A DNA stretch of 64,000 bases from Tubulanus polymorphus (Eukaryota; Animalia; Nemertea), in NCBI RefSeq assembly GCF_964204645.1, contig NC_134030.1, positions 13,384,556-13,448,555 of the forward strand, read 5' to 3'. Both the position numbers and the translations under genes were made by a program. The notes under the pieces are model-generated. The model searched no databases. It was not told where the DNA came from and saw only the letters and a list, made by a program, of their open reading frames with translations. Below are positions 3,542 through 38,400 of this stretch, one piece after another. Each line of letters opens with the position of its first letter. The first letter of the stretch is position 1.

Positions 3542-4647
3542 ATGGGCGGTAAAAAAACTCCTAATACTAAAGAACAATAGTTAAGAAATTTATATTACAA
3601 CCCTGAGAGTTCGGTTGCTTATTCTTCTACCAAAAATATATGGCGTCAAGTAAAACAAGATAAATTAGATAAGATAATCCCACAAAATTTAGTTAAATAT
3701 AAAGATATAAATGAATTTATGTTAGAACAACCAACATATACAACACATAGAAAAATTGTTAGAAAATATAAAACTCGTAAAACTATGGTAAGTTATGTAG
3801 ATCAACAGTGGCAAGGAGATTTAATTGATATGAAAAATGTTAAGAAAGATAATGATGATTATTGGTGGATATTGAGTATAATTGATATCTTTAGTCGTTA
3901 TGTATGGAGCTTCCCAGTTTATAGAAAAGATGCTGTACAAACATCAAATGTTTTAAGAAAATTTCTTTCGGATGATAAACTAAAACCACAAAAAATACAA
4001 TTTGATGATGGAAAAGAATTTGATAATTCACTTGTTCATGAACTCTTAGATAATCATAATATTAAATATTTTTCAACAAAATCGGATAAAAAAGCAGCAG
4101 TTGTTGAACGATTTAATAGAACATTAAGAACAAGAATGTGGAAATATTTTACAGCATATGATACTTTTAAATGGATTGATGTTTTACCAAAATTGATAGA
4201 AGGATATAATAATTCTTATCATTCTTCTATTGGAATGAAACCTATTGATGCTAGAAAACCTGAAAATGCTGAAATTGTTTGGAATAATTTATATGGAGCA
4301 TTTCTTGTAGATGATTTTGGTGAACCTAAATTTAAAATAGGACAACACGTTAGAATTTATAAGTATAAAAAGATATTTGATAAAGGATACGTAATTTTAC
4401 AAGAGAAATATATTAGATGAAAAAAATAATAAAAACAAAACCATTTGTCTATAAATTAGAAGATTTAGATGCTGAAGAAGTTGCAAGGTATTTTATGAAG
4501 AAGAATTAAGTTTAACTACTGAAAAACTAGAATAAGAATATGAAATTGAAAATGTATTAAAAACAAAAACTGTTAAAAGAAAAAAAGTAAAACGGTATGG
4601 ATGAATTTAATGAATGGATATTATCAAGTAAAATTAAAAATATATAA
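3542..4647 (+). pseudogene. Polinton DDE integrase with degenerate C-terminal chromodomain
   Basis: ATG 3542 is in frame with ORF 3719-4420. Premature TAG at 3578-3580, where copy 1 has TAT. Catalytic triad in WQGDLIDM / QFDDGKEF / AVVERFNRT. The frameshifted tail YEIENVLKTKTVK...EFNEWI resembles a chromodomain. Confidence 0.92.
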
Positions 4648-23260: not shown

Positions 23261-23821
<561 letters not shown>

Positions 23822-24542
23822 GGCTGGCAAACCACTGATAACTGTAGTACCCTCATCATACCAGACACAATATGCTTAATAGCTTCGAAAATAAGCTGTA
23901 ATCGCTACTTTTGACGTTGTTATGCACACTAATTGCACGGTAGTTGACGCGCCTTTGAAGGTGCCGATCGACGCTCAGTGTTCATATTTTCGAAACTAGG
24001 TGTAGGGTTAAAAGCTGGTCCGTTAAATTAGTTAGTTCCGGGTTTACAATAAAAGCTGGTGCATAAACCAGCCCTAGTCGACTGAGTCAAGTTAAAACAA
24101 TTATTCTGCGCACGGTCCTGGTCTTAAACCTGGCCCATCTATTCTTCTCTCCGGCCGGCCTTTATGGCGGTGTGGACGACTTTTATACAGCTACTTACTA
24201 TCGCCCGGGGCACAATCAAACTTTAACGTCTCAAAGGCTTTAATGCGCATTCGGAAGGGACAATGTTTTGATTTACAACAAAGGCCGGAGAGTACATAAT
24301 CTCGCGAAGAATAATCGTGTTAAAATGATCCAAGGCCCATTGAGCTTTCAAAGGCGCCCGACTGCACGTAAAATAACCATCGATCAATGTCGACAAAACA
24401 ATGCCGAGCGAAAACACCTTCTGATGATAAAAACGACAACTCGACAACTCTGGTTCTAAGCTTGCAAAAGTGCAATAGTGCAAAAATATAGCGCATTTCG
24501 TAGCGTATTATTCATTATAAATCCTCACAACATGATTGTTAT

Positions 24543-24639
24543 AGAAAGAAAACACCAGGCAAAAGCAATGTTTAAACAAAGCTATATGGAGAAAGAAAAC
24601 ACCAGGCAAAAGCAATGTTTAAACAAAGCTATATGGAGA
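24543..24639. repeat. Perfect 47-bp tandem duplication
   Basis: AGAAAGAAAACACCAGGCAAAAGCAATGTTTAAACAAAGCTATATGG x2. Confidence 0.95.
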
Positions 24640-25262
24640 TGAATGATATTAACAGCGTCTCATGATTAAATTTTGCAAACGTATTTATAAAGTTCCAAGC
24701 TCGATTGATATTTACCCATATGTCAATTTTAGATTAATATTAATATTTAACAATAGATCTGTTCACAGTTTGATCGAAACTAGTGACTTCGGCAGGCGAG
24801 TGGTTTCACAACTACTTTGAACCATTCTTGTGAGCTAGCTCTGCTACTTAGAATAGGAAGAAAAAATAATTCGCGTCAACAAAATTTGAATAGCTGGATC
24901 TATTCATTGTCATGTTAATGGTTTGGATTGTTAATTGTAACCCCGCCTGGGTTATCAAAGAATTCCCGAGCAATCGATCATATTACGAGCCGGTCTCTTC
25001 GACGTGCCAATAATGGAGAATTACGTTATTCAGAGCACTTAAGAATTTCATTCGCTATCAAAGACGGCTGCTAAATTCGGGTTTCGTCTGCGGGCGAGTT
25101 AATCGCCATTTTCCACTGGCGGAATGTTGTATTGAATTTTAATTGGCTTGCTTGCATTTAATCAAGCGTAAGCCTTTAAAGTAAGATGAATTTCTGTTTC
25201 GGGTCCGCATGTTTTTCTTGTAATGTACGTAATCCTTATTGTATTTTTCTAAGTTTTCTTTG

Positions 25263-25702
25263 TGTAACGATTAAGAGAAATTAGTGAAATTACGCGCACT
25301 CACCGGGGATCGAACCCGGGTCTTGTGCGTAGAAAGCAAGCGTGCTAGCCAGTACACAGAACTAGTACACTTGGTCAGCGGGTATACAGCTTCTCCTAAT
25401 ATGCGTAACACTGCCCTCCCCTCTAATTTCGGCTGCCCTCAGGCGATTTTAAAAATATATTTTATTACTATTATTGATAGATGATTATTATGAATATTTC
25501 ATAGAATATTTCAACAGAATTCTGTTGCCCGATTCGGGGTCTCCACCGATATAACGATTAAGAGAAGTGACAGTGAAATTACGCGCACTCACCGGGGATC
25601 GAACCCGGGTCTTGATTTCAGAAAGCAAGCGTGCTAGCCAGTAGACCAATAGAACTAGTCCACTTGGTCAGTGGTTATACAGCTTTTCGTATATGCGTAA
25701 CA
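25263..25702 (-). mobile_element. TRIM (miniature LTR element) with tRNA-derived LTRs, Helenus-like
   Basis: LTRs at 25550-25702 and 25263-25410 (TGTTACG...CGTTACA), 4-bp TSD TTTG, PBS-like (C)GGTGGAGA at 25548-25540 and PPT AGAGGGGAGGGCAG at 25424-25411. Each LTR carries B box GGTTCGATCCC; the A box TGGTCTACTGG is clear in the 25550-25702 copy and degenerate in the other. Confidence 0.85.
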
Positions 25703-26384
25703 TTTGTGCCTTGACATTTAAAGGGCACCAGCATTACCCAGCCATTACTTTTTTGCGGTTCTGCATAGTATGTTAGGACGTCGTATTAACATGTATGATT
25801 TCCAAGCAAATACAGATTACTTGCAGAAAACCTGTGGTAACTATTGTCATTTTCAGGCCAGGTCAAACTTTTCGATTCATTGCCCCGTGAACATAATAAG
25901 AGCATTGTATAATGTACGTATGAATATATTTTGATACATGTTCTCTCTACTGCCATGCGGTATCCCGTGCCCAGAATTCATTTGTAAATCTTTTATATTT
26001 CTCATTTTAAACACAACTGCGATACAACCCAGAACTATGGTGGCTGATAAGGGCCAAATACAATAATTTTCACACGACCTCGATTATATTAAAACACAAA
26101 ACGAAACTTATAGAGCAAAAACGAACTCTTCGTTTTTGCTAGGGCGCAAAAACGAAAAATCATAGAGCAAAAATGAATATTTTACATTACTCACTCTCTC
26201 TACTCTAAACTAGTGAAGAATCGTTACTACAGAGTTGTAAGCCTTGCCTCCGGCTGTAACGACTCGGGCAATGGTAATGCGAGTTGTGAATTGGCAATCT
26301 CAGCGTGAAGCACACGAACTGTAAGTTTCAAGTAAGAACCAGTACATCGTACTATACGATTCTCACTTCCCTTCTTTTATGTAA

Positions 26385-29075
26385 TATTTGAATAGAATTA
26401 TACATCAATTACAGGAAAGGAGGTGATACATGAAATTATATTTAAAGGAAGAAACAGACAAGCTATCACGAATTTGATGTGGGATGCTATTCCAGATCTT
26501 GGGACCAGACATATTTTTATGGAGAATAACCTGTGGGTTGTGCGAAAATACGGTTTATTGAGATCCTGTACATTGCGTAGAATTCTTAACTGTCACTCAT
26601 TTTAAAAGACAATGAATACATGAAGTTATGGGCACTAGATGATGGACTAGTTTATATATAAAGACCGCTGTAAGAAACTTATCAATATCAGCAAGATTAA
26701 GAAATCTGCCAAGTTTAAACGGAGGGGCCGTACATATATGCAAGAAATGGGGCATTGGATACAACGCGAATTGCTTTCTTTGAAGGAAGCAATTTGACTT
26801 TCTTTGACTTGTTTATACGTCCATAATCAAACCGATCGCTCGTGAAACTTTACTAGAAATATAGTCTATATGAGGAGACCATTGTAACACACCTAAGAAT
26901 TTCGAGGTATCAGTTTACCAAAGATTATATAGCTTGTTCTATTTATATTTAGGGAGAGTTTGTTTAATCTAAACGAGGAAGAGAGCCGCTTTAGCTCATT
27001 GTTACTTTTAATAACGAGAGCTATTGGGTCTTTATTGCTGTAAAATATAGTAGTGTCATCTGCGAACAGGATGAAGTTGAGAGGCTTTAGTAATATCGTT
27101 GATGTAGAGTTAGAATAGAAGAGGTCCGAGAATTGATCCTTGAGGTACTCCACAAATTATAGATTGTTTCGAAGAAAATGCACCGTTGTAAGAAACATTC
27201 AGTGTTCTTTCTTTTAGATAGCTAGTGAACCAAGAACACCTTTCTGTAATTTGCTGACGAGTATGCCATGGTTGATTGTGTCGAATACTTTTGAAAGGTC
27301 GATGAATATTCCCACAGTAACGTAACCCTCTTCAGTTAATTTGGAAATTTGATCAGTGAAACCAAGAAGGGCAAGCTCAGCGGAGTAACCCTTCCTAAAA
27401 CCGTATTGCTTTGGTGATAATACATTGTGTTTTTTGATAAATGAAATGTACTTCGCTCCAGTATCTTTGAGAAACAAGATAACATTGAAATCGGTCGATA
27501 ATTCGATATAATCTCCCTAGAACCGTTCTTAAATAGAGGAATTACTTTAGCAATTTTAAACTGAGTGGAAGCAATACCTGTTACATAAGAACGATTAAAA
27601 ACGTGTAAGAGAGGAGACAATATTTCATATATTGTGTTTGTATGTATGATATTATTATTATGTATTGATAATCTTTGGTTTAATATCATCAGGGCACGTC
27701 CCATTATCGCCGTCCATACTACTTACAATGCTTAAGATTTCAGATTGTATGATAGGTGAAAGGTAAATATTGTCCTCAATCCTAGCGTCAAGGTACACAG
27801 AAGCTGGTGATGATGGTGTCTTAGCTGCAAGGTCAGGCCCAATATTAACGAAGAAGGTATTTAATGCGTCAGCAACTTGATCAGTTGTCAGAAGAAGTCC
27901 ATCGCGAGACTTAAATTGAGGGATAGACTGATCTTGGATAGAAGTTCCCACTACTTTATTGAGAGTTTCCCAGGTTTTCCGTAGATCATGTATAACTTTC
28001 AAAAGTGATTCAGAATAATACTTTTTTCAGCAGTTTTAAAAGTCTCTCTGTTTGGTGCTGTACTGGAAACGATTCATCATATATGAATTTGTTTCTATCA
28101 AAAAATAAATTTTATGCTTGATTAGGGTCAGGTTCAGTAACGACAGGATTCCAATCTGTCATTAGTTGTCTGGTTTTCAAGTCGCGGGTCTTAGCCTCGG
28201 TTATAGGTCGAGAGGAAATGACGCTTCTATGAGAACTGTGTTTATGTATGAAATAGTGGATGACAAAAGTAGAGAAGTGATCGGAAATATCGGTGGTCAC
28301 AATACCTGAACGTGTTGAGTAATGATGAATAACATTAGAATATATGTGGTCAATGCAATAGGCGGTATATTCAGTGACGCGGGTCGGTTGGGAGATCAGA
28401 GGATTAAGCGAGAAGGTCAAAATATTATTGAGTAAAGCCTCGGTAGCTGCATTATTACTAAGTTTAGTGAGATCAATGATAAAGTCACCTAGTATGTAAA
28501 CGTTGTTATGGGTAATTCGGATAGTGAACCATTTATTTCATCAATAAAGTGATCAATGGGATGACCTAAATTTTTGTACATGACGCCGATTGTTACTTTT
28601 TCTCTTAGGAGACAAATTAACTTTGCACAATAGAAGTTAAAAGCATGTTGATCGAATTTATAGGTCGTCACGGATTTTGTATTCGGAACAATTATCAAAA
28701 TAAAGTGCCACACCCCCAGAATGATTGAAGTAACTATTGAAAAATATACTATTGTAACCATCCAAGGCATCAAAGAGTATGATTAGCATTTCCATCAGAT
28801 GCACACGTTTCGGTAACGCAAACAATGCTAGGTAAATTAACAAATGCATGGAAGGTGTCTCCTAAAGACTTACAATTCTTATCAAAGCTTCTGATGTAGG
28901 CATGGTAGATCCACGTCCCGTGCTTTCGCGAAGGAAAGTTGATAAGCTGGTTAAGCTGATCGATTGAGTAGTATGAATCATCAACGTTATCCCCATCGCT
29001 GGCTTGATCGAAATTGAAGTCATTTAACATCCCAAATCATGCGTTCAGAATTAGGAGGAACAAGTATTGCCTGCC
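26385..29075 (-). mobile_element. Decayed CR1-group (L2/Crack/Daphne-like) LINE ORF2: APE endonuclease + reverse transcriptase
   Basis: APE motifs VTET, GGVALY, GDF.IDL, PTRVT...IDHIYSN and SDHF. RT motifs KIAKVIPLFK, NYRPIS, QYGFR, FIDLSK.FDTINH, GVPQGSILGPLLF and FADDT. C-terminal GPKIWNSIP. Many frameshifts; ends approximate. Confidence 0.92.
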
Positions 29076-32000
29076 ATAAAAATGATAAATCGATAATAGT
29101 TTACCACAATTGACAATATATTGTAGAAGATGTCATGTCTATATCTGATGCTTTTAACAGAGAAAACGAAACATGAATATAGCTGTAACAACTACCATTT
29201 ACAGTGCACTCGGGAACTAGCTTGTCAAAATAAATCCAAAGTCATCAATTCCAATTCCATCTTGATGAAATATCTTTTATTCAAATGCTTGGTCGGCTAC
29301 CGACCGCAACAACTGCTCAGTACAAACTTCCCACTAAAAGTGTGTGTCGTGTCTCCAATTCTATCTCAACTCGACTCTAAGGTATATATAATATGAAAAC
29401 AAAAACAAAAACAGACAGAGGGGTACGTGGTATTTCACAATACATGTGGAACAAGGCATTTGACATTGAAATATTGACTAATCTACTGGCACATTTGCCA
29501 TCTCAATATCGCTTTAGAGATGGTCGCGATCGTTTCCAAAAAATTAATGAGCATCCAATAAATCACGACACTATTCCTTTTATTCCAAAAAGTTATGTCT
29601 TTTTAATCAATCGCAAACAGAACACAAATTTTGAATTTTCTCATCGAGAATAGAAATATCGCCTGCGGTTTCCTCGGTAGAATACACATTATTTACTAAG
29701 ATGCACTGGTCAGGGACATGATTTTGGATTTTTTCGAAATTGAGATCCAGCTCACTCGCGCTAAAAATTGAGTTACTCACGAATTCAAGTAGCTTTGATG
29801 TGTCTAACTGCTCCGGTTGTAAAATATCCACTGACAAATGCTCATTATCCCAGTCTAAGATGAAAACAACGTCGAAAACATCAAGTTCTCCCCGTATCTG
29901 AAAATGTCGATGCGCAAAAGCTCTCAAATCGACGGGAAAAGCACATTTCGACCCGAAAACATCGTTCAGCGCGAGAAAAGACGTTTTCTCATCAGATCTT
30001 CCCCGTATCGAGAAAATGAAAATGTCGATGCGCAAAAGCGCTCAAATCGACGGGAAAAGCACATTTCGACCCGAAAACGTCGTTCAGCGCGAGAAAAGAC
30101 GTTTTCTCATCAAGTTTTCCCCGTATCGAAAAAAATGAAAATGTCGATGGGCAAAAGCGCTCAAATCGACGGGAAAAGCACATTTCGACCCGAAAACGTC
30201 GTTCAGTGCGAGAAAAGATGTTTTCTCATCAAATTTTCTCCGAATCAAAAAAATGAAATTGTCGATGCGCAAAAGCGCTCAAATAGACGGAAAAAGCACA
30301 TTTCGACCAGAAAACGTCGTTCAGCGCGAGAAAAGACGTTTTCTCATCAAGTTTTCTCCGAATCGAAAAAATGAAAATGTCAATGCGCAAAAGCGCTCAA
30401 ATCGACGGGAAAAGCACATTTCGACACATTTCAACCCGAAAACGTCGTTCAGCGCGAGAAAAGACGTTTTCTCATCAAGTTTTCCCCGTATCGAAAAAAT
30501 GAAATTGTCTATGCGCAAAAGTGCTCAAATCAACGGAAAAAGCACATTTCGACCCGAAAACGTCGTTCAGCGCGAGAAAAGACGTTTTCTCATCAAGTTT
30601 TCCCCGTATCGAAAAAATGAAATTGTCTATGCGCAAAAGTGCTCAAATCAACGGAAAAAGCACATTTCGACCCGAAAACGTCGTTCAGCGCGAGAAAAGA
30701 CGTTTTCTCATCAAGTTTTCCCCGTATCGAAAAAATGAAAATGTCGATGCGCAAAAGCGCTCAAATCGACGGGAAAAGCACATTTCGACACATTTCGACC
30801 CGAAAACGTCGTTCAGCGCGAGAAAAGATGTTTTCTCATCAAGTTTTCTCCGTATCAAAAAAATGAAATTGTCGATGCGCAAACGCGCTCAAATCGACGG
30901 AAAAAGCACATTTCGACCCGAAAACGTCGTTCAGCGCGAGAAAAGACGTTTTCTCATCAAGTTTTCTCCGAATCGAAAAAATGAAAATGTCAATGCGCAA
31001 AACCGCACAAATCGGCGGCAAAAGCACATTTCGACACATTTGAACCGAAAACGTCGTTCAGCGCGAGAAAAGACGTTTTCTCATCAAGTTTTCCCCGTAT
31101 CAAAAAAAATGAAATTGTCGGTGCGCAAAAGCGCTCAAATCGACGGAAAAAACACATTTCGACCCGAAAACGTCGTTCAGCGCGAGAAAAGACGTTTTCT
31201 CATCAAGTTTTCTCCGAATCGAAAAAATGAAAATGTCAATGCGCAAAACCGCACAAATCGGCGGGAAAAGCACATTTCGACACATTTGAACCGAAAACGT
31301 CGTTCAGCGCGAGAAAAAACGTTTTCTCATCAAGTTATCCCCGTATCGAAAAAAATGAAAATGTCGGTGCGCAAAAGTGCTGAAATCGAAGGGAAAAGCA
31401 CATTTCGACCCGAAAACATCGTTCAGCGCGAGAAAAGACGTTTTCTCATCAAGTTTTCTCCGTATCGAAAAATGAAATTGTCGATGCGCAAAAGCGCTCA
31501 AATCGACGGGAAAAGCACATTTCGACCCGAAAACGTTTTTCAGCGCGAGAAAAGACGTTTTCTCATCAGATCTTCTCTGTATCGAAAAACGAAAATGTCG
31601 ATGCGCAAAAGCGCTCAAATCGACGGGAAAAGCACATTTCGAAACGAAAACGTATTTCAGCGCGTGACAAGACGTTTTCTCATCAGATCTTCCCCGTATC
31701 GAAAAAATGAAATGTCGATGCGCAAAACCGCTCAAATCGGCGGGAAAAGCACATTTCGACACATTTGACCCGAAAAAGTCGTTCAGCGCGAGAAAAGAGG
31801 TTTTCTCATCAAGTTTTCCCCGTATCGAAAAAAGGAAAATGTCGATGCGCAAAAGCGCTCAAATCGACGGGAAAAGCACATTTCGACCCGAAAACGTCGT
31901 TCAGCGCGAGAAAAGACGTTTTCTCATCAGATCTTCCCCGTATCGAAAAATTAAAATGTCGATGCGCAAAACCGCTCAAATCGGCGGGAAAAGGAAATTT

Positions 32001-35405: not shown

Positions 35406-38400
35406 TCAAATCGACGGAAAAAGCACATTTCGACCCGAAAACGTCGTTCAGCGCGAGAAAATACGTTTTCTCATCAAGTTTTCCCCGTATCAAAAAAAAT
35501 GAAATTATCGATGCGCAAAAGCGCTCAAATCGACGGAAAAAGCACATTTCGACCCGAATACTTCGTTCAGCGCGAGAAAAGACGTTTTCTCATCAAGTTT
35601 TCCCCGTATCGAAAAAATGAAAATGTCGATGCGCAAAAGTGCTCAAATCGACGGAAAAAGCACATTTCAACCCGAAAACGTCGTTCAGCGCGAGAAAAGA
35701 CGGTTCTCATCAAGTTTTCCCCGTATCGAAAAAATGAAATTGTCTATGCGCAAAAGTGCTCAAATCAACGGAAAAAGCACATTTCGACCCGAAAACGTCG
35801 TTCAGCGCGAGAAAAGACGTTTTCTCATCAAGTTTTCCCCGTATCGAAAAAATGAAAATGTCGATGCGCAAAAGCGCTCAAATCGACGGGAAAAGCACAT
35901 TTCGACACATTTCGACCCGAAAACGTCGTTCAGCGCGAGAAAAGATGTTTTCTCATCAAGTTTTCTCCGTATCAAAAAAATGAAATTGTCGATGCGCAAA
36001 CGCGCTCAAATCGACGGAAAAAGCACATTTCGACCCGAAAACGTCGTTCAGCGCGAGAAAAGACGTTTTCTCATCAAGTTTTCTCCGAATCGAAAAAATG
36101 AAAATGTCAATGCGCAAAACCGCACAAATCGGCGGGAAAAGCACATTTCGACACATTTGAACCGAAAACGTCGTTCAGCGCGAGAAAAGACGTTTTCTCA
36201 TCAAGTTTTCCCCGTATCAAAAAAAATGAAATTGTCGGTGCGCAAAAGCGCTCAAATCGACGGAAAAAACACATTTCGACCCGAAAACGTCGTTCAGCGC
36301 GAGAAAAGACGTTTTCTCATCAAGTTTTCTCCGAATCGAAAAAATGAAAATGTCAATGCGCAAAACCGCACAAATCGGCGGGAAAAGCACATTTCGACAC
36401 ATTTGAACCGAAAACGTCGTTCAGCGCGAGAAAAAACGTTTTCTCATCAAGTTATCCCCGTATCGAAAAAAATGAAAATGTCGGTGCGCAAAAGTGCTGA
36501 AATCGACGGGAAAAGCACATTTCGACCCGAAAACGTCGTTCAGCGCGAGAAAAGACGTTTTCTCATCAAGTTTTCCCCGTATCAATAAAAATGAAATTGT
36601 CGATGCGCAAAAGCTCTCAAATCGACGGAAAAAGCACATTTCGACCCGAAAACGTCGTTCAGCGCGAGAAAATACGTTTTCTCATCAAGTTTTCCCCGTA
36701 TCAAAAAAAATGAAATTGTCGATGCGCAAAAGCGCTCAAATCGACGGAAAAAGCACATTTCGACCCGAAAACGTCTTTCAGCGCGAGAAAAGACGTTTTC
36801 TCATCAAGTTTTCCCCGTTTCGAAAAATGAAAATGTCGATGCGCAAAAGCGCTCAAATCGACGGGAAAAGCACATTTCGACACATTTCGACCCGAAAACG
36901 TCTTTCAGTGCGAGAAAAGACGTTTTCTCATCAGATCTTCCCGTATCGAAAAAATGAAAATGTCGATGCGCAAAAGCGCTCAAATCGACGGGAAAAGCAC
37001 ATTTCGAAACGAAAACGTCTTTCAGCGCGTGAAAAGACGTTTCCTCATCAGATCTTCCACGCATCGAAAACAATGAAAAATGAAATTGTCGATGCGCAAA
37101 AGCGCTCAAATCGACGGGAAAAGCAAATTTCGACACATTTCGACCCGAAAACGTCTTTCAGCGCGAGAAAAGACGTTTTCTCATCAGATCTACCCCGTAT
37201 CGAAAAAATGAAAATGTCGATGCGCAAAAGCGCTCAAATCGACGGGAAAAGCACATTTCGACCCGAAAACGTCGTTCAGCGCGACAAAAGATGTTTTCTC
37301 ATCAGATCTTCCCCGTATCGAATAAATGAACATGTCGATATGCAAAAGCGCTCAAATCGACGGGAAAAGCACATTTCGACCCGAAAACGTCGTTCAGCGC
37401 GAGAAAAGACGTTTTCTCATCAAGTGTTCCCCGTATCGAAAAAATGAAAATATCGATGCGCAGAAGCGCTCAAATCGATTGTAAAAGCACATTTCGACAC
37501 ATTTCGACCCGAAAACGTCGTTCAGCGCGAGAAAAGACGTTTTCTCATCAAGTTTTCCCCATATCGAAAAAATGAAAATATCGATGCGCAAAAGTGCTCA
37601 AATCGACGGAAAAAGCACATTTCGACCCGAAAACGTCGTTCAGTGCGAGAAAAGACGTTTTCTCATCAAGTTTTCTCCGTATCGAAAAAATGAAATTGTC
37701 TTTGCGCAAAAGTGCTCAAATCGACGGAAAAAGCACATTTCGACACGAAAACGTCGTTCAGCGCGAGAAAAGACGTTTTCTCATCAAGTTTTCCCCGTAT
37801 CGAAAAAAGGAAAATGTCGGTGCGCAAAAGGGCTCAAATCGACGGGAAAAGTACATTTCGACACATTTCGAACTGAAAACGTCGTTCAGCGCGAGAAAAG
37901 ACGTTTTCTCATCAAGTTTTCCCCGTATCAAAAAAATGAAATTGTCGATGCGCAAAAGCGCTCAAATCGACGGGAAAAGCACATTTCTACCCGAAAATTG
38001 CGTTCAGCGCGAGAAAAGACGTTTTCTCATCAAGTTTTCCCCGTATCGAAAAAAATGAAAATGTCGATGCGCAAAAGCGCTCAAATCGACGGGAAAAGCA
38101 CATTTCGACACATTTCGACCCGAAAACGTCGTTCAGTGCGAGAAAAGACGTTTTCTCATCAGATCTACCCCGTATCGAAAAAATGAAAATGTCGATGCGC
38201 AAAAGCGCTCAAATCGACGGGAAAAGCACATTTCGACCCGAAAACGTCGTTCAGCGCGACAAAAGATGTTTTCTCATCAGATCTTCCCCGTATCGAATAA
38301 ATGAACATGTCGATATGCAAAAGCGCTCAAATCGACGGGAAAAGCACATTTCGACCCGAAAACGTCGTTCAGCGCGAGAAAAGACGTTTTCTCATCAAGT

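Follow-up and report, generated by a model that had tools for sequence, protein, structure and literature searches.

A 440-bp miniature LTR element with tRNA-like segments in its LTRs, probably a Helenus (TRIMp3) copy, in the ribbon worm Tubulanus polymorphus

Helenus elements (TRIMp3) are TRIMs that carry tRNA-derived sequence in their LTRs, together with a primer site (PBS) and a polypurine tract (PPT) (Kojima 2024, Biology 13:119, PMC10886601). They have been recorded from six animal phyla, with target-site duplications (TSDs) of 4 bp in animals and of 5 bp in fungi and plants, and the animal elements are primed by tRNAs for Lys, Leu, Trp, Arg, His, Ile, Pro, Glu or Ser (PMC10886601). Whether they use RNA polymerase III (Pol III) was left unvalidated in that study (PMC10886601). 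Cassandra in plants and Ajax in nemerteans likewise hold a small-RNA Pol III promoter within the LTRs of a TRIM, but theirs is a 5S rRNA module and their TSD is 5 bp long, whereas the element described here is tRNA-derived and has a 4-bp TSD. A scan around our element gave no Rfam match to 5S rRNA, and the PBS-leader word of Ajax is absent from the genome; on these grounds, and from the length of the TSD, membership of Cassandra or Ajax was rejected. A Retrozyme was also rejected, as no hammerhead motif was found at E ≤10 in positions 24500-26500, and none at the gathering score in the window.

The window is the 64,000-nucleotide stretch of the T. polymorphus genome that we analysed. The 440-bp element at positions 25263-25702 falls inside the size range of Helenus (311-1263 bp) and shares with it the A/B-box tRNA segment in each LTR, the PBS, the PPT, the 4-bp TSD of the animal members and an abundance of solo LTRs. 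As in Helenus, the tRNA part is not a functional tRNA, and the LTRs show no similarity to those of the presumed Gypsy helper. The first-pass annotation had pointed to a Helenus group with tRNA-like LTRs and 4-bp TSDs in animals; the group exists and is defined in this way (PMC10886601). We consider it very probable that the element is a Helenus/TRIMp3 copy that would depend on a Gypsy-type element for mobility and would carry a Pol III promoter in its LTRs. After the 2024 description of Helenus such a find is largely expected, and it leaves the understanding of Helenus-type elements unchanged.

The sense strand of the element is the minus strand, on which the order is 5' LTR, PBS, core, PPT and 3' LTR. 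The 5' LTR (25550-25702, 153 bp) and the 3' LTR (25263-25410, 148 bp) were found as annotated, both by reading the sequence and with a repeat finder. Their alignment has 135 identical bases out of 145 (93%) and 11 gap columns. Both begin with TGTTACG in sense; the 3' LTR ends in CGTTACA and the 5' LTR in CGTTATA, with TA replacing CA. The inverted termini that had been reported are present, but the repeat is not a perfect 7 bp: TGTTACG and CGTTACA match at six of seven positions. The entire LTR-core-LTR unit lies between two identical copies of TTTG (plus strand), at 25259-25262 and 25703-25706, which bears out the proposed 4-bp TSD. The 500-bp left flank occurs nowhere else in the genome, which therefore offers no paralogous empty site.

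The internal region (25411-25549) is 139 bp long, non-coding as first described, and A-rich in sense; about 26 nt of leader present in other copies are missing. The PBS, CGGTGGAGACCCCG (25535-25548, minus strand), begins one base (T) inside the core after the 5' LTR and has two mismatches to the family PBS, TGGTGGAGAACCCG. The PPT, AGAGGGGAGGGCAG (25411-25424, minus strand), adjoins the 3' LTR directly, and the same PPT-LTR junction is repeated at 11 genomic sites, in support of the original call. Between PBS and PPT the minus strand has a T5 run (25451-25455), a potential Pol III terminator that three of six other cores lack. Stop-free stretches in the 440 bp reach at most 69 aa, and the element codes for nothing.

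The window's own genome (268 Mb in 77 contigs) was searched, which gave at least 402 first-look LTR candidates, 40 of which were scored. Most candidates are single units of about 150 bp that comprise the complete LTR, end to end. This predominance of single units, and the tRNA-like A/B-box segment in each repeat, would also be expected if the locus were merely two adjacent ordinary tRNA-derived SINEs, lying 139 bp apart by chance. Against such a pair, however, stands the structure of the single units themselves. About 10 of 12 independent ones end sharply in TG..CA and are each flanked by a perfect 4-bp TSD of their own (GGGG, CAGT, ATAT, CAGG, CAGA, ATGA, GCCG and CCTA, as well as GGTG with a 1-nt shift), where chance would give a perfect TSD in 1/256 per copy, and none of the 12 carries a tail. 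Within the unit the tRNA-like part begins at position 55 rather than at the very 5' end. PBS, leader and PPT recur between paired units at other loci, and in the window a single TSD encloses the whole pair. The end structure, the TSDs and the LTR-core-LTR copies elsewhere thus refute the SINE pair, to which we give next to no credence. The single units are solo LTRs produced by LTR-LTR recombination. The family does share with SINE2 elements its short length, lack of coding capacity, high copy number and tRNA-like A/B-box module, but it differs from them in its LTR ends, PBS, PPT, fixed 4-bp TSD and lack of a tail; SINE2 elements use LINE machinery, whereas this family was mobilised by that of LTR retrotransposons. 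Hence 400 or more tRNA-like stretches of this genome represent LTR debris rather than tRNA genes or SINEs, which matters for the annotation of tRNAs and repeats.

Further LTR-core-LTR copies were found at loci L002, L006, L010, L027, L029, L042, L051 and L062, with TSDs TCAT at L010 and CCCC at L027. Copies with an intact internal region have in common a leader starting with TTGGTGGAGAACCCGAATTGATCTCGG and the PPT block; the internal region of L027 differs and is without the family PBS. Genome-wide, we counted 19 LTR-PBS junctions at up to three mismatches (0-1 with a reversed control) and 11 PPT-LTR junctions at the same threshold (control, 0). Set against at least 402 LTR candidates, these counts imply that solo LTRs and fragments outnumber internal regions by about 20:1. 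The solo LTRs, further full copies and individual 4-bp TSDs that had been suggested as a check are thus all present, and the single-TRIM interpretation has gained support from the recurring LTR-PBS-PPT-LTR layout. The signs of an ordinary SINE (5' truncation, tails, TSDs of variable length, a pair unique to this locus) were not seen among the genomic copies. A metagenome scan with a conserved 24-mer of the family gave no match.

The element might instead be an internally deleted copy of an autonomous element with the same LTRs, and not belong to a dedicated miniature family. Unusual sequence follows some of the LTR-PBS junctions (L003, L004, L016 and L043), as this would predict. Yet not one of the 19 LTR-PBS junctions that have a true TRIM LTR enters coding sequence within 1.5 kb; the junction matches that do enter gag/protease-like ORFs (L046 and L049) are without a TRIM LTR body; and cores of 90-170 bp recur in at least six copies. 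We regard a deletion derivative as highly improbable and retain the interpretation as a TRIM family.

Some family-related sequences have had other fates. Loci L008, L018 and L020 (C4:19354886, C6:16642700 and C75:15956) have an identical solo LTR with identical flanks and the same ATAT duplication, the LTR sitting within a larger duplicated segment or another repeat. In contig C11 (G000:C11:8824151-8824859; L017, L024, L025 and L028) the interior of the LTR has given rise to a tandem array, in which units of LTR positions 9-142 alternate with units of 9-88; without LTR ends, PBS or PPT, the array constitutes a mini-satellite derived from the LTR. In a similar manner, LTR positions 19-70 are repeated three times at C9:14952725-14953120. 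The 3' LTR of the full copy in L010 (1846-2287) is interrupted by an insertion of about 430 bp that is rich in TAGAATAG-type words and may be a small nested element.

The 4-bp TSDs show that the family was inserted by a retroviral-type integrase. The layout fits minus-strand synthesis primed by tRNA-Ala at the 5' LTR and plus-strand priming from the PPT. The required proteins would have been supplied by an autonomous element of the Ty3/Gypsy type.

The primer assignment rests on the genome's own tRNA genes. Over 14 nt the family PBS is perfectly complementary to the 3' end of tRNA-Ala with CCA added. From this PBS we predicted a tRNA gene starting GGGGAAY, and a search with this query returned 19 genes with a complementary 3' end, with anticodons AGC and TGC and all ending in GCCCGGGTTCTCCA; ARAGORN classes all 19 as tRNA-Ala. 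The PBS of the window copy matches the tRNA-Ala 3' end plus CCA at 12 of 14 positions. The annotated primer identity therefore stands, with two mismatches in 14 positions in place of the one in nine originally counted. The PBS sequence bears no relation to the tRNA-like module. Genes for tRNA-Ala(AGC/TGC) are clustered at C12:80863-81221 (G000) and C12:1235854-1269957, with spacings of about 145 bp or a few kb.

The tRNA-like segment occupies positions 25589-25648 of the 5' LTR and 25300-25357 of the 3' LTR, in both cases on the minus strand and thus in the sense orientation of the element, and its A and B boxes are spaced as in tRNAs. The 5' LTR has an intact A box (TGGTCTACTGG, 25638-25648) and B box (GGTTCGATCCC, 25595-25605), the A box being identical to that of the tRNA-Glu gene at 10 of 11 positions. 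In the 3' LTR the B box is intact (25307-25317), but the A-box region has been shortened by a small deletion. The claim of a sense-strand segment with both boxes in each LTR accordingly holds for the segment and the B box, and fails for the A box of the 3' LTR.

We compared the module with two tRNA genes of T. polymorphus, one tRNA-Glu(UUC) and one tRNA-Gly(UCC). The segment of the 5' LTR is identical to the former at 46 of 63 positions and to the latter at 47 of 63 (z 11-12 against shuffles). Where LTR positions of about 55-113 align with tRNA positions 8-66, identity is 73-76%, with z 11-15 when tRNAs are shuffled, while tRNA-Ala aligns with the T-arm only. The loop CTTTCTA would read as the anticodon TTC. 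By its sequence the module is Glu/Gly-like, in agreement with the earlier call, with Glu and Gly being indistinguishable.

The module runs from the D arm to the T arm, has no acceptor stem and cannot yield a tRNA. The Rfam tRNA model scores 24.9 bits at 25303-25357 on the minus strand (E 0.025; gathering score, 29), and in 18 other loci all scores are below 29 bits, with a best of 26.1. ARAGORN called no tRNA at the element. A tRNA-fold test gave no significant stability (z 0.3 and -1.2). Among 37 LTR copies, conservation is 0.81-0.94 per block everywhere, the A and B boxes being no different from the rest of the LTR.

The A and B boxes, their tRNA-like spacing and the sense orientation suggest that the module may have served Pol III as an internal promoter. 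The predicted start site, some 10 nt ahead of box A and close to LTR position 45, would divide the LTR into a U3 of about 45 nt and an R-U5 of about 108 nt. The transcript would cross the 5' LTR, PBS, core and 3' LTR before ending in the flank, and would thereby retain the repeated R on which strand transfer depends. Neither LTR of the window element has a T4 run, and a Pol III transcript could therefore traverse both LTRs and a core. The core of this copy is a different matter, as the T5 run at 25451-25455 would stop Pol III; T4 runs are present in two of five other cores. The general scarcity of T runs is mostly explained by composition, the sense strand of the cores being rich in A (37%, against 24% T).

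Pol III drive of the LTRs is what we infer from these features, and it has a competitor. The element could be a TRIM in which the tRNA-like module is a passively captured fragment of a tRNA or SINE, the template RNA being made by Pol II or by read-through. The module is indeed incomplete and in no copy reaches the Rfam threshold, its boxes are conserved no better than their flanks, T4 or T5 runs occur in half of the cores, and the LTR contains AT-rich, TATA-like words (CATATAGG and TGTATAAC) 25-45 nt upstream of the module. On the other hand, the module lies in sense with a tRNA-like A-B spacing, the LTR has neither a T4 run nor an AATAAA signal, and the boxes are conserved across many independent Helenus families (Kojima 2024, PMC10886601). 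The uniform conservation within the LTR is itself less telling than it appears: because the copies are old, neutral decay would wipe out any differential conservation of the boxes. A passive relic thus seems to us unlikely, though well within consideration, and a Pol III promoter within the LTR remains the preferred explanation of the module.

The age of the copies can be judged from their divergence. Measured against a majority profile of the 153-bp LTR alone, 37 LTR copies are 78-96.5% identical to it, with a median of 90%. The LTR pairs of L002 and L006 are 85% identical, and near-identical LTR pairs occur only within a duplicated segment or tandem array. The copy in the window is old and has lost its competence: its PBS is mutated, its 5' LTR ends in TA, part of the leader is deleted and the core has a T5 run, so that it must be considered dead. 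The whole TRIM family looks extinct, with no recent activity in the copies sampled.

Candidate helpers occur in the same genome. A Gypsy-type family, here called family G, has the PBS TGGTGGAGAACCC(A/G)AAT at no fewer than 24 genomic sites, an LTR of 514 bp (TGTCAC...GGTTACA) and 4-bp TSDs (TAAT in L082, CGTT in L081). In L081 (522-3352) a single TSD-flanked element encodes RVT_1 and, after it, Integrase_H2C2, the domain order of Ty3/Gypsy elements. Matches to reverse transcriptase proteins lie 1.0 kb downstream of at least eight family G PBS sites, within open frames of 662-1447 aa. Several genomic copies of family G retain open frames of 900-1450 aa, and L083 also belongs to this tRNA-Ala-PBS Gypsy-type family with L081 and L082. 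A 2.2-kb non-coding derivative (L082:453-2636) has an LTR pair that is 99.2% identical, from which we conclude that family G has been mobile recently.

The PBS region of one family G copy equals that of the TRIM over 18 nt, 4 nt beyond the match explained by the tRNA. Other coding elements with a tRNA-Ala PBS are L046, with a gag-aspartyl-protease ORF, and L049, with an 18-nt perfect PBS. None of family G, L046 and L049 has LTR-body similarity to the TRIM. The first-pass annotation had suggested looking for an autonomous Gypsy element that shares the ends, PBS and PPT; family G shares the tRNA-Ala PBS, the GTTACA terminus and the 4-bp TSD, but not the LTR body. For TRIMp3 no LTR similarity to the helper is expected (Kojima 2024, PMC10886601). 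Since family G was recently active and the TRIM copies are old, a current partnership of the two is doubtful. Mobilisation of the TRIM by a Gypsy-type element is suggested by these shared sequence features, and the elements named are plausible candidate helpers only.

A different repeat came close to the TRIM at its PPT. Loci L055, L058 and L061 (C1:20972408, C2:9326555 and C8:4295618) are three copies of a repeat that has GAGGGGAGGGCAC next to the first 17 nt of the TRIM LTR, matching the TRIM PPT and these 17 nt at 21 of 24 positions. About 290 nt are conserved upstream of this point and only 46 nt downstream, into the supposed LTR. As a helper this repeat was rejected: neither an LTR pair nor a long ORF, a Pfam domain or a remnant of pol was found in the 10-kb stretches around the copies.

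Every structural feature that defines Helenus (LTRs, boxed tRNA segment, PBS, PPT and TSD) is present in the window element. The Helenus entries nearest to it by host, those from ribbon worms, are Helenus-1_LiLo, Helenus-1_NGe and Helenus-2_NGe. The published set of Helenus consensus sequences lacks eight words of our family (six 10-11-mers and the words that open and close the LTR), and the LTR-PBS junction of Helenus-1_LiLo is absent from the window's genome. The earlier suspicion of an uncatalogued family is upheld against the Kojima 2024 set by these absent words. With the structure in place and no match to the consensus set of PMC10886601, we conclude that this is a new Helenus family. 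A literature text search found no later paper on TRIMp3.

The family differs from described Helenus elements in two respects. Its primer is tRNA-Ala, which is named for no Helenus PBS in the paper or its supplements (PMC10886601), and its module is Glu/Gly-like, whereas Lys, Val and Thr types are aligned there (PMC10886601). The TRIMp3 class thus gains a family with a primer and a module type unlisted in its founding paper. A more ambitious proposal would be that the family is an independent Helenus lineage in an unlisted host, the first animal one primed by tRNA-Ala, and that the young Gypsy-type family G is its helper. We put this forward tentatively, as a combination that is rather improbable in its entirety. 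If it were true, the TRIM and family G would be a tractable pair for testing Pol III transcripts as templates of LTR retrotransposons.

The element lies in an ORF-poor, repeat-rich part of the window, with a (TCTCCCTC)n tract on one side and a 118-bp satellite on the other. The tract consists of 69 copies of the 8-bp unit at positions 23265-23819, and the satellite extends from position 29899 onward. Regularly spaced plus-strand ORFs occur from 30.5 to 64 kb, including 204-aa ORFs at 37572, 41350, 42935 and 48179; these ORFs are without a convincing Pfam match. An ORF at positions 3719-4420, which encodes an integrase core domain (rve, E 1e-10) and shares 59% identity with an ORF in L082:5491-6318, is a leftover of another retroelement or transposon.
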